From Wallemia ichthyophaga EXF-994 (taxonomy: Eukaryota; Fungi; Basidiomycota), in contig NW_008806279.1 in NCBI RefSeq assembly GCF_000400465.1, forward strand, positions 296,107-328,106: a DNA stretch of 32,000 bases, given 5' to 3'. Below are positions 16,851 through 23,100 of this stretch, piece after piece (the first letter of the stretch is position 1; each line of letters begins with the position of its first letter). The notes below the pieces were generated by a model. It had not been told where the DNA came from and ran no database searches. It saw nothing but the letters and a program-made list of their open reading frames with translations. The position numbers and the translations under genes are program-made.

Positions 16851-17809
16851 TCACTTGTCTGCTTCGTAGACATATCCACCTTGGCGCTGCACTACTTTCA
16901 GCTCAAGTCTGTCGAGCTCCTCCTTCCCTTGCGTGACACCCGCACTGACTGTTTGACCTGGTATCAGCGGTCCAACGCCAGAAGGCGTACCGGTGAGCAA
17001 AACATCACCTTCCTTTGGTGAGTGGGTAAGTGATTGACACTGACTAAGCACGCGATTCATACCTCCAAACGCATGATGGATGAAACGTGCTGGATAAGTC
17101 TTGGAATACGGAATATCATATCAGAAGTGCGTCCCATTTGTCTGATGGCATCATCTGCCTATACGATATGAGTTATTTGCCAGAGTGGATTAACAAGCGT
17201 ACCTTTAACCACAAGCCCAATTGATGTGGATCGAATACTTTCTCCCTAGGGATGAAATCACTGCTACTGTTAGTCGTTCTTGAGAGGTGCAAGTGACATA
17301 CCCAATCGGAGTGAAGCTATCAAAGCCTTTCAAGGTAGACCAAGGCAAACCCTTCTTCTTGATTTCGTCTTGAATGTTTCTAGCCGTCATATCGATAGCT
17401 AGCGCTGTATCTGTGTGAGGAAGATATCAAGAAAGATACGGGAGACGAACAGTAACCAGCAATATGCGATAGGGCGTCGTTGTGCGAAATGTCCCTTCCA
17501 GTCTCGCCAATGACGACACCAAGCTCAACTAACCAAAGATCAGACACCGGACTCAAGACGCTGATAAGAAGCTGAGCTCACCTTCGTGATGCGCAACGAC
17601 GCCTTGTGGAATCTCAATGTTGCCCCGGGTGCGTACAAAGGAGCTTGTTGGCTTTAAGAAGAAGAAAGGTTCCTTTGGAATTGCGTTTTGAAGCTCTGCT
17701 GCACGTCAGACCATAATTTGGGCCGGAATAACGGACCTTTGGCGTGTTCAGAGTAATTGCGTCCAATTGCGACAATCTTGCGAGCTGTAGAGTGAAATTT
17801 CTGTGCCAT
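16851..17809 (-). CDS. Fumarylacetoacetate-hydrolase family protein (FAHD1/Fmp41-like), 6 exons
   Basis: Spliced motifs KIVAIGRNYSEHAK|ELQN, PFFFLKP, HHE|VELGVVIG, ALAIDMTARNIQ, WSTLKGFDSFTPIG, E|EGDVLLTGTPSGVG. Confidence 0.93.
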
Positions 17810-17853
17810 GTTGAGTGTACTTGAACAACTGTTTCCGCAGCTTGTTGGTGGTT

Positions 17854-18142
17854 CTAATCGTTTTGAAGGGGATATGACTGTAGCATGAGCGAGTGCTACG
17901 TGTGTACACCAAACCACACGCTTAGAATCACACTGTACAACGTCACTGCTCACAGCTTCCGAGCACAAATTTTCGAGGGAAATGTAACGAATCGGATGTA
18001 AAGAAATAAACGATACACGCAAGATAACAAAAAGAAATAAGAACAAGCTACAAAAAAAAACCAAATAAGCTCGGTTATGTATGATTTTTGCGAGTCGTTG
18101 GAGCAATTGGCGAAATTTTGTTTCTTCCAGACCAACAGCCAT
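17854..18142 (-). CDS. Candidate ~70-aa type II membrane microprotein (exons 18142-17954, 17877-17854); unspliced frame runs into the FAH ATG
   Basis: ATG 18142, amphipathic/basic N-terminus, hydrophobic AYLVFFCSLFLFLFVIL, GTGAGC donor (17953) and GCTCAT..CTACAG acceptor (17878). No recognised homology. Confidence 0.3.
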
Positions 18143-18291
18143 CTCTTTGGATTTGCGAATAACTCAATCCCAGCCAGGAGAAAGAGTAGCACTTAAAGAG
18201 ACAGCAGTAGAAATCCCAAGTACTTCATTGGCTCTCAAATCACGCAGAGTCAACTCAAGCAACAAGCCTTAACTAACTCCACTTCGTCGGA

Positions 18292-18408
18292 ATTCGATCT
18301 CCCTCGCCACACGCTTTAGGCCTCACAGTGAGTTTATTGTGGTGGGCGCAGACACCCATCTAATGTGTCCCACAGTTCACTGGCTGGGTATCTTTTAAAC
18401 CTCCTTGA
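18292..18408 (+). promoter_or_regulatory. Spliced non-AUG (AUU) uORF in the ODC leader, 22 aa, ending PP-stop; intron 18328-18375
   Basis: GTGAGT..CTAAT..CCACAG 48-nt intron in phase 0 joins ATT CGA TCT...ACA to TTC ACT GGC TGG GTA TCT TTT AAA CCT CCT TGA. ATT is the only near-cognate codon in frame. Confidence 0.65.
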
Positions 18409-18630
18409 CTTGCGTAGACCTGCACAAGCTCAAGCAGTTTATCGTTTCGACTTTTCCACTTGCTGCCGCTAGAAACCTTGTTCAAGCGTCAGCACCTAAA
18501 CTTTATATTCTTAGATCCTCGCGAATCGAAGCGGGGATTTTGAACTCGACTGACGGCCACTATAAGCGAGAGGCCAATCAGGCACTTCTCGCGTTCAACG
18601 GCTACCTCACCACAGTCAAAGAGCGACACA

Positions 18631-20136
18631 ATGCAATTTTATGAATCCACACCAGCCACAGGCCATCCTCAATTATCTCCTACAGCCTCAAACAACTCAA
18701 ACAACTCCCCAAAGAACCACGTTATCCGTCATAATCTTCCTACTCCCCCACCATCACACTCCGCCAGTCCTGCCCCATTAGATAGGCAGAAATGCGTCTA
18801 TGAATCCCTCCCAAATCTCTATCACGGCTCAACTGAATCTCAACTCGCTAAGCAAATCAAATTACTTGAAAGCCACAAAGATTTCGCTGAAGAAAATCCT
18901 TTCTTCGTTGCAGATATTTCTTCCGTCTACAAGCAGCACATTAGGTGGAAGAATGAACTACCTCGAATCGAGCCTTTCTTTGCCGTAAAGTGCAATCCTG
19001 ATCCTTATGTCATTAGACTGTTAGCCGCTTTGGGCTTAGGTTTCGATTGCGCTTCTCAAGCTGAAATTAACACCATCCTAAGCTTACCCACCAGTTGCCC
19101 TGCAACTGAAGATCCTTCCAATAACATTATATTCGCAAACCCATGCAAAGCTGCTTCAATGGTCAAGTTCGCACGTCGAAACCAAGTCAAAATGATGACA
19201 TTCGATAATACCGATGAACTCCACAAGATAGCCAAATTATATCCCAGTGCTCAACTAGTCATCAGAATTCTTACAGATGACTCAAAGAGTGTTTGTAGAT
19301 TCGGTATCAAGTTCGGCGCTCCACTCGATGCAGTCCCACACTTGTTGAAGACAGCGAAGGATTTGAGTTTGAATGTCATCGGTGTCAGCTTCCACGTTGG
19401 ATCGGGTTGTTATGATCCTCAATCATATGTAGATGCTATTCAACGCTCAAAGAAGACATTTGAAGTTGGTGAATCTCTTGGTTACAAGTTCAACCTTCTT
19501 GACGTAGGTGGGGGATTTGGTCATGACAACTTTGAATTACTCGCAAGATCATTGGGTCCAGCTGTGGACGAATATTTTCCAGCAGAAACTGGAGTTCGTG
19601 TGATCGCTGAACCCGGTAGATTCTACGTCCATGATGCCTTCTCATTGGCTACGAACATAATTGCAAAGAGAGGATCGGCTGATGATATTGATGAAGATAT
19701 GGATGATCAGTCACCTAAAGTCATGTACTACCAGAACGACGGTGTCTATGGAGCCTTTAATTGCGTCATGTTCGATCACGCTGAGCCTAAAGCAAGACCA
19801 TTGACAGTACAATCACAGTTAGTGCTTGAAGATGTTCAGCTCAACGAAAGAAAGGTTGACAGTGAGGAAATATCTTGCTCAATCTGGGGACCAACGTGTG
19901 ATAGCTTAGACTGCGTAATGAAGTCTCACAAGCTGGCGAAAGGGTTACAAGTTGGTGATTGGTTGAGGTGGGATGAGATGGGAGCATACACGATCTGCGC
20001 TGCATCAACATTTAATGGCTTTAGCAGAGCTGACGTTCACTACACGTCTGGTGCAGATTCGATGGAGGCTCAAGAAGTTCGGAGGATTTTACAGCAAACA
20101 GCGCCTGATTTACAAGGCTTAATAATGTATCCATAA
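18631..20136 (+). CDS. SPE1: Ornithine decarboxylase (501 aa)
   Basis: PFFAVKCNPD (PLP Lys), GVSFHVGSG, LLDVGGGF, IAEPGRFY, WGPTCDSLD (catalytic Cys), MGAYT. Confidence 0.97.
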   Translation: MQFYESTPATGHPQLSPTASNNSNNSPKNHVIRHNLPTPPPSHSASPAPLDRQKCVYESLPNLYHGSTESQLAKQIKLLESHKDFAEENPFFVADISSVYKQHIRWKNELPRIEPFFAVKCNPDPYVIRLLAALGLGFDCASQAEINTILSLPTSCPATEDPSNNIIFANPCKAASMVKFARRNQVKMMTFDNTDELHKIAKLYPSAQLVIRILTDDSKSVCRFGIKFGAPLDAVPHLLKTAKDLSLNVIGVSFHVGSGCYDPQSYVDAIQRSKKTFEVGESLGYKFNLLDVGGGFGHDNFELLARSLGPAVDEYFPAETGVRVIAEPGRFYVHDAFSLATNIIAKRGSADDIDEDMDDQSPKVMYYQNDGVYGAFNCVMFDHAEPKARPLTVQSQLVLEDVQLNERKVDSEEISCSIWGPTCDSLDCVMKSHKLAKGLQVGDWLRWDEMGAYTICAASTFNGFSRADVHYTSGADSMEAQEVRRILQQTAPDLQGLIMYP

Positions 20137-20172
20137 ATCAAATTTCATGATAAATATTCTTAATTACTAACT

Positions 20173-23100
20173 ATGAAGAGGTCGCACACAGATGCGCCTC
20201 GAAACAACCGTCAGCGTAAGAATATTCTGACTAGGACATTCACAGTCCAAGGCCCCAAAGATCCAAGAGTCGCTGTTGATGAATGGCGCGGCGTGAAGAA
20301 GAGTGATGATAGCAAGGAGAATGATGGTAGTGGGAGTGATTGGATTTCATCTGATCAAAAGAAAGACGTCATCAAATGTGCAATCGCTTACACTATTGCA
20401 ACTTTATTCACCTTTAATCCAACATTAAATCGTCTAATAAGTGCCTTAGACTTTAATGACCAATCTAAATATTCCAAAGTGGCAGTGAATGCCCATAATC
20501 TGGCATCTGCTACCGTCTGGTTTAATCCTGCGCGTAGTCGCGGCTCTATGCTACAAGCTATTCTCTTTGCTTTGACTGCTTTAGCATTCGTCACAGTTTT
20601 ATCTTTAGCCGCTACTTTCACGTTGACTTTCGTGGATTTTGATCCGGAAAATGAGTACTGGTCTACAGATATCGATGAATTCATCGTCGCTTTTGTTTGG
20701 ATCGGTATTGGCTCAGCTATCGCCGCTTTCGCTAGACTCAAAATGGCCAATCAGACGTTCAACTCAGCAGCGACCATGTCTTGCATTGTTTTCTACTCAG
20801 TTGTGGTAAACAATGGCGGTATAGCCAGGCTAATCCAGTATCTGGGTATGGCGATGATTGGTATTATCATCTCATCCACCGTCTGCCTCTTAATCTGGCC
20901 GAAAAGCTCAACAAGTGCACTGCGAAGAGATCTCAGTGACAGCATGGATAGTTTTGCAATGCTATTAGATACACTGTTCTCCAATTTCACTCAAGACGGC
21001 GAAAAGCCACTCGATAAAGATGCTTTCGATAAAGCTGTCAAAGCGCACGACGAAGCTTTTGTCACTTTGAAAGCTGAGCTCCCACACGCCCTTCGTGAAA
21101 GATGGTTGAAAGATCAGCGCGTTAACAAGAGTCAGATACGTCAAACATACAAACACGCAGTGGAAGCTATCGAACGTTTAGCTCAGCATTTGACAGGGTT
21201 TGTGGGGTATACTTAGGCAGGCTGGTTAGCTGACATTATTTACAGATTGAGAAGCTGTCTTAATATGCGTGATGAGATGATGCTTCAGGATGAAAGCTTC
21301 TCAAAAGCATTCCAGACAAGCATTGACATAGCAAGAAAACCCATGCAAGAACTTACGGTGGGGTATAATATTAAACTCTGGATTATGGCTAACTCACTTT
21401 CAAGGAGACAACTGTGAACGTGCTGAAAGAAGCAAAGTTGGTGTTCAAACGTGATTCAAACCCTGACGTGCTTACTGAAACGCGCCGCTCTATGTTGATA
21501 GCTAGTGAAAGAATGCAACGTGCAATAAGAAAGTTTGATATTTCTTCCGGTATAGTGCTCGAGTCTTCGCAGCCAGACATTAGAATAGATGTCAAGTCAA
21601 TACAGGAGCCATCGCTGATAACTCAGTTCTATTTATTCAATCTAAGAGAGCTAGCAACAGAGCTATACCACCTTCTATTATTGATAGATGAGATAAGCGA
21701 GCATGATTTAATGTTCGTCTTTAAAATCTCATTGAGAAACTCCAATATTCTTGATGAGAATTATCAAGATGACGAAAGTGTCTTTGACGAGAGCAGCTCT
21801 TATTTCAGCACTAAGCTACAGCGTCCACCAATGTTGCGCAGAAGAATGAGAAAAACTCTATCCAAATTAATTCCCATTGATCCCAGTGAATTTAAGGTAG
21901 ACGATCAATCTAAATACTGGAGAAGCAGTAAGGTTGTTGAGGAGGAGAGTATTGGTTTCCCAGATCGACTCAATCAGATGCTATGGAAAGTACTCAGATT
22001 TAGCAGAAGAAGGGATGTTAAGTTTGCTATTAAAACGGGTGGTGCTTTGGCTATACTCTCGATGCCCTCCTTCCATTCCAACTTACGAAAGTTTGCTATG
22101 AACCTAAGGCTGGAATGGGCGTTGATTAGTTGCTTTGCATCTCTCTCTCCCACAGTCGGACAGACAAATTTCATGTGGTGAGACATACCAAGGTGTGATT
22201 AACACTACTCACAATATATCAGCTTCCAGCGTATTCTCGGTACGCTTGTTGGTGCTGCTGTCGCAGTCATTTCATTCATCGCACTGGGTCATTCACTAGT
22301 CGGTGCTATAGGATTTCCTATTGTCGGCTTGTTTTTCTCGCTTCCATGTTTTTATATAGTTGTTGGATCGAGCAGATATTCTTCGACTGGCCGTTTCATT
22401 CTTCAATCGTACAACCTCGTAGCATTGTACGCATTTAATTTGCGCGAGCAAGATATGAATCCTATAACAATAGCCGCAAAGCGCTCAGCGGCTGTTACAT
22501 TGGGAATTACATTCAGTATGATAGTTTCAAGACTTTGGTGGCCAGTTGAAGCTCGCAAAGAGTTAAGAACTGGACTAGGTGATTTGATTCTAGATTTAGG
22601 ATATCTTTATAACAGACACACATTAGCGCAGTCAGTCTCGCCAGTGCCTTTCTGTCTCAGTCCACAGTCTGTCGATTCGTTCGATCTGGCATCGGAAGCT
22701 GAGCGTGCTTCGGAAACAACAAACTTGCTTAGTCCACAAAAAACAATGATGGGAGAAAAGAGAGAGGAGCAGATATCCAAGGAGTTCATGTCCATGGAAT
22801 TGCACATACAAATACACTTGATCAAATTGCGTAACTTGCTAGCACAGACCAAGAATGAACCCAGAATAAAAGGACCATTCCCAGTAAAGAAGTATGCAGA
22901 CTTACTTGGCTCATGTCAAAGAATACTTGAGGTAATGCATATTCTGGGAATGGTAACGCAGCCGCAGAACTTGTACGCACGACGCTTCATGGACAAATTC
23001 AGAGAAGAGAGGAGAGAAATGGTTGGAAACGTCCTGCTCTTCTTTAGCGTGATTGCTAGTGCACTCTACTCCAAGTCGCCACTGGCACCGTATCTCCCAC

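Follow-up and report, generated by a model that had tools for sequence, protein, structure and literature searches.

Conserved coding regions in the mRNA leaders of ornithine decarboxylase (ODC) homologues were described by Ivanov, Loughran and Atkins (2008), whose work is taken here as summarised in PMC2811004. According to this summary, such upstream conserved coding regions (uCCs) occur in animals, Pezizomycotina, Basidiomycota and Zygomycota, are 22–100 codons long and nearly all lack an AUG, most of them starting at a conserved AUU; two adjacent prolines stand near the C-terminus, where conservation is concentrated, and the origins in four groups are considered independent (PMC2811004). 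Experimental tests of the class concern AZIN1, the uCC of which mediates a polyamine-dependent repression requiring the AUU and the last 10 codons, and indirect data exist for Neurospora spe-1 (PMC2811004). The mechanism of Ivanov et al. (2018), as related in PMC8705083, involves a polyamine-dependent pause at Pro-Pro-Trp with eIF5A as the sensor, ribosome queuing then enhancing a weak start. Here, we analyze the ODC leader of Wallemia ichthyophaga EXF-994, a basidiomycete fungus, within a stretch of 32,000 nucleotides (the window; contig NW_008806279.1, positions 296,107 to 328,106 of the forward strand), which contains an upstream open reading frame (uORF) of this kind. Judged from its sequence, the Wallemia uORF is a diverged member of the known class, showing every feature by which a uCC is recognized at that level. 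We consider it probable (about 0.75) that it is the Wallemia version of the ODC-homologue uCC and mediates negative feedback by polyamines through its AUU, a stall at Pro-Pro-UGA-C and ribosome queuing.

The initial annotation of the locus had described a canonical 48-nt intron in the ODC leader, the removal of which creates a phase-0 frame of 22 codons that begins with ATT and ends Pro-Pro-stop, and this anatomy (Table 1) was recovered base for base. The spliced product would be IRSPSPHALGLT joined to FTGWVSFKPP-stop. An in-frame scan from the upstream TAA agrees with the claim that ATT is the only near-cognate start: none of the five codons in between (CTC CAC TTC GTC GGA) is near-cognate, and ATT 18292 is the sole AUG or near-cognate codon in the uORF frame of W. 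ichthyophaga. In Wallemia hederae, ATT is the first near-cognate codon in frame, with AAG at codon 20 as the only other one, and the 23 codons open upstream of ATT include none; in the W. mellicola-like lineage, the frame is closed by a TAG three codons 5′ of ATT. The uORF (18292–18408) and ODC (18631–20136) are separate ORFs on the same strand. Pro-Pro-stop is not rare in a single sequence, with a chance of about 0.08 in one 340-nt leader by a rough estimate from base frequencies, and thus the weight of the case comes from conservation.

Four Wallemia lineages could be compared: W. ichthyophaga (the window, L001 and L011–L013), W. hederae (L010), a Wallemia genome from a Logan assembly of public reads (L101), and W. 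mellicola/sebi-like metagenome contigs (L002, L004–L009 and L014), the ODC of which is 75% identical to that of W. ichthyophaga. All Wallemia contigs recovered either are genomic or metagenomic or stop short of the uORF (L098 and L100), and none of them contains a spliced leader. The ATT, the 12 + 10 codons, a GT...AG stretch between them, the ending GWVSFKPP-stop and the TGA are kept in 4/4 lineages. The exon 2 peptide FTGWVSFKPP is invariant, its codons differing only synonymously (TCT/TCA, AAA/AAG, CCT/CCA), and exon 1 likewise has synonymous variants (TCT/TCA, TCG/TCA, CCA/CCG/CCT). In total, the exons contain six synonymous sites and three replacements (R2I, P4L and T12V), which are confined to the mellicola-like lineage and leave the last 10 codons untouched; per lineage pair, 0–3 replacement codons stand against 2–6 synonymous codon changes. 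The uORF peptide is better conserved than the ODC enzyme: between W. ichthyophaga and W. hederae the identities are 100% for the peptide and 89% for ODC, and between W. ichthyophaga and the mellicola-like lineage 86 and 75%. This is conservation of the coding type, with exon variation concentrated at third codon positions and with flanks and intron that cannot be aligned. It is also what had been predicted from the single sequence, namely that AUU and peptide would be conserved with synonymous variation.

The intron diverges in the way introns do. Its orthologues in Wallemia are 46, 50, 52 and 57 nt long, not all of them multiples of 3, and keep GT...AG ends and a branch-like motif, which in the window is CTAAT, 11 nt before the terminal CAG; the two single-nucleotide differences between the window and W. 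ichthyophaga L001 in the leader region both fall within it. Read without splicing, the frame meets an early stop in W. ichthyophaga and L002 and is shifted in W. hederae and L004 (four sequences). The contrast between exons and intron, the frame-breaking length changes and the conserved GT...AG ends together support the intron. A strict motif (GTDAGT...CTRAY...YAG) occurs in 2% of shuffled leaders and at 11 other places in the window; 10 of these 11 candidates measure 42–52 nt and five connect frames that are 199 codons or longer, so that 48 nt is a normal intron size here. Introns average 61 bp in length in W. ichthyophaga, compared with 55 bp in W. sebi (PMC3849046). As claimed initially, splicing removes the only AUG of the leader, because ATG 18363 is intronic and there is no other between 18082 and the ODC ATG at 18631, and the unspliced frame ends early, at a stop inside the intron (...VSLLWWAQTPI-stop). 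Retention would leave a 23-codon ORF without prolines, plus an AUG-started uORF of 11 codons. Since intron retention is the commonest mode of alternative splicing in W. ichthyophaga (PMC3849046), it may be speculated that splicing adds a second layer of control.

The spliced leader is free of ATG for 434–795 nt in each lineage. Shuffles preserving dinucleotides had zero ATGs in 0.6–9.6% of trials, depending on the lineage, and the leader ATGs that do exist in W. ichthyophaga and the mellicola-like lineage are located inside the intron. Such depletion fits a long scanned leader beginning well upstream of the uORF. Together with a contig carrying an orthologous leader (L016, below), it suggests that uORF and ODC probably share one mRNA in Wallemia. 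Further upstream, about 550 nt before the ODC ATG, a block GCTCGGTTATGTATGATTTTTGCGAGTCGTTGGAGC (18070–18105) is kept between W. ichthyophaga and W. hederae and not in the mellicola-like lineage; it contains the final ATGs before the leader becomes free of them and is a candidate for the promoter or the start of transcription.

How does the Wallemia uORF compare with the ODC leaders of other fungi? Metagenome and metatranscriptome contigs were scanned with an ODC alignment, which yielded 80 loci, and the genomes of Sporisorium, Sporobolomyces and Dacryopinax were added. Dozens of ODC leaders have an ORF ending (F/Y)(K/R/E)PP-stop or GEPP-stop, and two groups of Pro-Pro-stop leader ORFs stand out, one in Agaricomycotina and one of Pezizomycotina type. 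Adjacent prolines after a mostly AUU start, in Basidiomycota among other groups, are indeed documented for the class that the initial annotation had invoked (PMC2811004). The Agaricomycotina consensus, reconstructed from the loci, is ATT-(P/T)xQxRNxDLRLLTLEWSSVRGEPP-stop, with 21–26 codons; written for the whole basidiomycete group it is RNxDLRLL...WSSVRG(E/D)PP-stop. Contig L016 has ATT-IPDQARNRDLRLLTLEWSSVRGEPP-stop, a hairpin and an uninterrupted ODC coding sequence, that is, a spliced uORF on the same molecule as ODC. In nine genomic loci of Agaricomycetes (L024, L027, L031, L036–L038, L040, L046 and L050), the peptide is encoded in three exons, as is IPALDPRLLHREWCSVRGDPP-stop in Dacryopinax (L097). 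The first of the two introns is in phase 2, 1 nt before the TGG of the tryptophan, and the second lies inside the Gly codon before EPP; in L018 the first is retained and the second is absent. With nine Agaricomycete loci and Dacryopinax all split by two introns, interruption by introns looks general among basidiomycete ODC uCCs. Assembly by splicing, which the initial annotation had proposed for the Wallemia uORF, is supported as regards the intron itself and does not make the element special.

The Wallemia uORF has the ATT start and the length (22 against 21–26 codons) in common with the Agaricomycotina uORF. When ALGLTFTGWVSFK--PP is aligned by eye to DLRLLTLEWSSVRGEPP, L, L, W, S, K/R and PP are shared, the two being too short and too different for statistics. 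With so little shared peptide sequence, orthology of the uORFs rests on position and architecture rather than on sequence. The ORFs of Pezizomycotina type are long, with an LPL.EEES.RPRQ core and the ending (F/Y)(K/R/E)PP-stop, and several of them end in SFKPP, the last five residues of the Wallemia peptide. The same five residues end a leader ORF in an animal-like ODC transcript contig (L082:370–470, ending ...FRWGLGIFHSFKPP-stop), the stop of which lies 1 nt before the ODC ATG. A C follows the stop in all Wallemia lineages tested (3/3), in the other basidiomycete candidates (13/13) and in 18/26 candidates of Pezizomycotina type and other uCCs; Pro-Pro-stop-C is thus found in 16/16 basidiomycete cases, with Pro codons varying synonymously. 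UGA followed by C is a weak terminator (PMC9841425). Separately, Sporobolomyces L096 (970–1097) has an open frame ending ...ANSPKPP-stop followed by C, 63 nt upstream of the hairpin described below, and this frame possibly represents the uCC in Pucciniomycotina; the ODC leader of Sporisorium L095 (Ustilaginomycotina) has neither Pro-Pro-stop nor the hairpin.

A further feature of the basidiomycete leaders lies between the uCC and ODC. It consists of a hairpin, CCUCGC(U)-loop-(A)GCGAGG, with a variable loop of 4–10 nt, and of (CG)ACUGA, which stands 9–12 nt past the hairpin in all Wallemia leaders and in most of those from Agaricomycotina; the element is present in Agaricomycetes, Dacrymycetes, one Pucciniomycotina and Wallemia (e.g., L016:247–285, L097:1420–1455 and L096:1160–1185). 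Dacryopinax and Sporobolomyces have CUUCGC/GCGAAG, a compensatory change from C-G to U-A in one pair; at the seventh pair, six sequences have U-A and two have C-G, and the Wallemia stem is CCUCGC/GCGGGG with a U-G pair (18517–18522/18531–18536). A covariance model (R1) built from 14 basidiomycete sequences other than Wallemia was searched against both strands of the window (64 kb). Its best match is at 18511–18562 (13.4 bits, E 0.022), and by our own arithmetic the top match would fall by chance within the 220 nt that separate the uORF from the ODC ATG with a probability of about 0.3%. R1 also matches the mellicola-like leaders L002 and L004 at E 2e-4; with default filters it has no match at E ≤ 1 in W. 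hederae L010, and it has none in the Pezizomycotina-type loci or in Sporisorium. The distance of the element past the uCC stop is 11–146 nt in Agaricomycotina and 108 nt in the window. With this match downstream of it, the Wallemia uORF is seen to occupy the equivalent place in an orthologous leader, and the presence of the hairpin inside the transcribed L016 leader argues that this region of the window is transcribed too.

No Rfam family matches 17800–18700, and no description of the hairpin-ACUGA element was found in the searchable literature, a search that the primary 2008 uCC paper lies outside. The element is a lead beyond the original finding and a new handle on basidiomycete ODC leaders. 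It may act with the uCC, for instance through the fate of ribosomes past the uORF, through a bound factor or through alternate pairing with the sequence at the uORF stop; a two-part sensor made of uCC and hairpin-ACUGA is conceivable, though less likely than not. Past ACUGA, the Agaricomycete leaders (L016:293–360, L018, L027 and L036) share UUACCGUCCUC...UCCGCC-loop-GGCGG...CAGGU, which suggests a second hairpin.

Table 1. Features of the W. ichthyophaga ODC leader and gene, in window coordinates.
Feature	Position	Strand	Description	Basis
In-frame TAA closing the uORF frame upstream of ATT	18274–18276	+		frame scan
ATT, proposed non-AUG start codon	18292–18294	+	context gtcggaATTc; G at −3, C at +4	
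uCC exon 1	18292–18327	+	12 codons, IRSPSPHALGLT	sequence and Wallemia comparison
Leader intron	18328–18375	+	48 nt, GTGAGT...CTAAT...CAG	splice-site motifs and exon/intron conservation contrast
uCC exon 2	18376–18408	+	10 codons and stop (TGA), FTGWVSFKPP-stop	sequence and Wallemia comparison
Pro-Pro-UGA-C, proposed stall or slow-termination site	18400–18409	+	CCT CCT TGA at 18400–18408	
Conserved leader hairpin	18515–18538	+	AUCCUCGC-loop-GCGGGGAU	covariance model built without Wallemia
CGACUGA motif	18547–18553	+	10 nt past hairpin	comparison of leaders
Wallemia-conserved block	18554–18627	+	GGCCAYWAUAAGCGAGAGGCC...CUCGC...GGCU...AGUCAAAGAGCGAC	invariant within Wallemia
ODC main ORF	18631–20136	+	501 aa, intronless	

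An outline of the proposed process is as follows; by analogy with the described systems, we infer translation from AUU, the stall, its dependence on polyamines and eIF5A, and the geometry of the queue. The ODC mRNA would begin upstream of 18292, and removal of the 48-nt intron would join the exons and delete the only AUG of the leader. Most scanning ribosomes would bypass the weak AUU and reach the ODC AUG by leaky scanning, and the few that initiate at AUU would make IRSPSPHALGLTFTGWVSFKPP and then arrive at Pro-Pro and UGA-C. Pro-Pro bond formation and termination after proline require eIF5A, and the stop is itself weak. High polyamines would impair eIF5A, so that ribosomes stall at Pro-Pro-UGA-C and the following ones queue; a queued scanning subunit dwelling near AUU would start there more often, leaving fewer ribosomes for the ODC AUG, which amounts to negative feedback. 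AUU lies 63 nt upstream of the last Pro codon, the one in the P-site (60–75 nt in Agaricomycotina uCCs), and as this is about two ribosome lengths, two queued ribosomes would keep the scanning subunit behind them close to AUU. At the stall, the entire 22-residue peptide would still be within the exit tunnel, which fits its conservation over most of its length.

Several observations weigh against this feedback scheme. The context of ATT is only partly favourable across Wallemia (G, a purine, at −3, but C or A at +4). Apart from the Trp, a Ser, one basic residue and the terminal Pro-Pro, the Wallemia peptide has little in common with the Agaricomycotina consensus. The intron of the Wallemia uORF is in phase 0, 9 nt (three codons) before TGG and, counted from the Trp codon, 8 nt away from the Agaricomycotina site, and the two have no intron position within the uCC in common, although position is not a published feature defining the group; the 22 residues are compatible with descent from the Agaricomycotina peptide as well as with its replacement. 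As for splicing, the start of transcription and initiation at AUU, all three are points that we infer for Wallemia. Finally, selection on the peptide does not account for all conservation of the uORF, and W. ichthyophaga has promoter-like motifs near the ODC ATG; these two points are taken up with the alternatives to which they lend weight.

The uORF might be translated and yet serve as a constitutive brake or a leader-quality element, Pro-Pro-stop slowing termination at any polyamine level. Nothing in the sequence measures a polyamine response, and within the class only AZIN1 and, indirectly, Neurospora spe-1 have been tested (PMC2811004). However, this architecture is found repeatedly, and specifically in front of ODC homologues, in four groups considered independent and with the Pro-Pro endings seen in dozens of leaders, and recurrence on one polyamine gene argues for a polyamine link. 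A constitutive brake is accordingly regarded as unlikely.

Alternatively, the conserved blocks might be untranslated RNA or DNA elements, such as splicing enhancers, structures, protein-binding sites or promoter elements, in which case the open frame would be incidental. This agrees with the unusual conservation of synonymous sites: the same codon is kept in the uORF at 19/21, 14/18 and 12/18 sites, compared with fractions of 0.51, 0.43 and 0.33 in ODC, which points to some constraint on RNA or codon choice besides the peptide. A predicted pairing between the uORF stop and a sequence near the ODC AUG, described below, also agrees with it. Yet frame, 12 + 10 length, ATT and stop are kept in four lineages despite intron changes that are not multiples of 3, variation is concentrated at third codon positions, and Pro codons vary synonymously across fungi. 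Moreover, an element acting only as DNA would not need GT...AG borders exactly at the edges of conservation. Incidental openness of the frame is therefore very improbable.

In a third alternative, the blocks are part of another transcript located upstream, or of a rare isoform from a distal promoter, and the main ODC mRNA starts near 18590–18620. W. ichthyophaga does have TATAAG (18561–18566) and a CCAAT-like CCAATCAG (18574–18581) 50–70 nt before the ATG. As a conserved TATA/CCAAT promoter, however, this block was rejected, since W. hederae has CAATAAG and the mellicola-like lineage CCTAATAG, so that neither motif is kept across lineages. The region just upstream is homologous to the hairpin within the transcribed L016 leader, in every lineage the stretch depleted of ATG extends 430 nt or more upstream from the ODC start codon, and the intergenic region measures 820 nt in a genome in which 36 nt separate the ODC stop from the next gene. 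A downstream start of this kind has even less chance of being correct. A mere chance combination of an ORF-like stretch with an intron-like motif, for which the frequencies of Pro-Pro-stop and of the intron motif given above might speak, is effectively refuted by conservation across lineages with ODC only 75% identical and with unalignable flanks and intron.

Between the hairpin and the ODC ATG lies the Wallemia-conserved block of about 70 nt, for which a nested helix is predicted. Every column of it is invariant, so that there is no covariation by which to judge its fold or any long-range pairing. The ODC frame is open upstream of the ATG for 29 codons in the window (from 18544) and over 43–47 codons in the mellicola-like lineage and W. 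hederae; the open stretch runs through an invariant block beginning CGA CUG ACG GCC, and the lineages differ by indels of 3 and 21 nt. The conserved CUG-ACG is at 18550–18555, with a predicted hairpin beginning some 15 nt past the ACG. A possible explanation, weaker than that of a two-part sensor, is a non-AUG start giving an N-terminally extended ODC peculiar to Wallemia; the stretch may also be no more than an RNA element. Other basidiomycetes have open in-frame stretches of 24–79 codons upstream of ODC, without a common motif, and so lend the extension no support beyond Wallemia. ODC proteins of 531–532 aa starting with MANFNN (P0122, P0125 and P0130) were considered as an ATG variant and rejected, because the L014 DNA has TTG; this TTG (L014:432 and L098:165) aligns to ACG 18597–18599 of the window and was taken as a start by a prokaryote-style gene caller. 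UUGACUU at the uORF stop (18406–18411) is complementary to AGUCAA (18614–18619) near the ODC ATG, and RNAalifold predicts that they pair; AGUCAA can pair instead with the UGAC of CGACUGAC (18550–18554). All three are invariant in Wallemia and hence show no covariation. A ribosome stalled at the uORF stop would cover the UUGACUU partner.

The ODC protein of the window is 100% identical to W. ichthyophaga TIB65573.1 and contains Pfam domains PF02784 and PF00278; its AUG has A at −3. The upstream neighbour is a divergently transcribed FAA-hydrolase gene starting near 17808, and the downstream one, for a FUSC/BRE4-like membrane protein, follows directly (window 20136–20173). In the deposited gene model of W. 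hederae (L010:1501–6332), ODC and the FUSC/BRE4-like gene are merged into one protein of 1511 aa, which looks like an annotation error.

With these results, the ODC uCC is recognized also in Wallemiomycetes, a class of basidiomycetes that branched early and is extremely halophilic. Novelty is limited: the class is known from fungi and animals, and what is new is a diverged member of it. The reading of the initial annotation, a candidate polyamine switch of a class already established, is supported, and the element is not of a new kind. Nearly the whole peptide is replaced, and what persists is AUU, a size of some 22 codons, a single Trp, a basic residue ahead of the prolines and Pro-Pro-stop-C, which marks these as the indispensable features. 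The identity of SFKPP-stop in Wallemia, in Pezizomycotina and in the animal-like ODC leader suggests convergence, with selection acting on a minimal stalling motif. Lacking an AUG and being split by an intron, such regulators are missed twice over in annotation.

Among known systems, the uORFs of AdoMetDC are comparable. Those of mammals (MAGDIS) and plants (a small uORF ending Pro-Ser) respond to polyamines, the peptide stalling the ribosome at termination (PMC2811004; PMC4505036). As proposed for the Wallemia uORF, they act on a gene of polyamine synthesis, the main ORF of which they block, but they differ in starting with AUG, in their peptides, in the gene and in having no weak start dependent on queuing. 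The vertebrate AZIN1 uCC has in common AUU, an ODC-homologue leader, adjacent prolines near the end and a proposed stall with queuing. It has an internal pause at PPW, whereas the Wallemia prolines are the last two codons before UGA-C, which would make the stall one of termination. AZIN1 is an antizyme inhibitor rather than an enzyme, and its uCC, of about 50 codons, is longer than the Wallemia uORF. The animal uCC ends Pro-Ser, unlike the Pro-Pro of Wallemia, and the origins are considered independent (PMC2811004).

The spe-1 uCC of Pezizomycotina, of about 100 codons, ends ...LGFAPFKPP-stop, ...YRPP-stop or ...FEPP-stop in the leaders recovered here; ...SFKPP-stop of Wallemia is an exact match to the FKPP-stop form, and C frequently follows the stop. 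It differs in being four to five times longer, in its LPL.EEES.RPRQ core, which Wallemia lacks, in the absence of R1 matches to the hairpin-ACUGA element and in belonging to another phylum; the common ending is most likely convergent. The closest counterpart is the ODC uCC of other Basidiomycota. The peptide is largely different (HALGLTFTGWVSFKPP in Wallemia against DLRLLTLEWSSVRGEPP), two introns stand against one, and −3 of ATT is A rather than the G of Wallemia. The two nevertheless agree in the gene, in the position in the leader upstream of hairpin-ACUGA, in the ATT and the number of codons, in a Trp within the C-terminal third, in the Pro-Pro-stop-C end and in being interrupted by introns.

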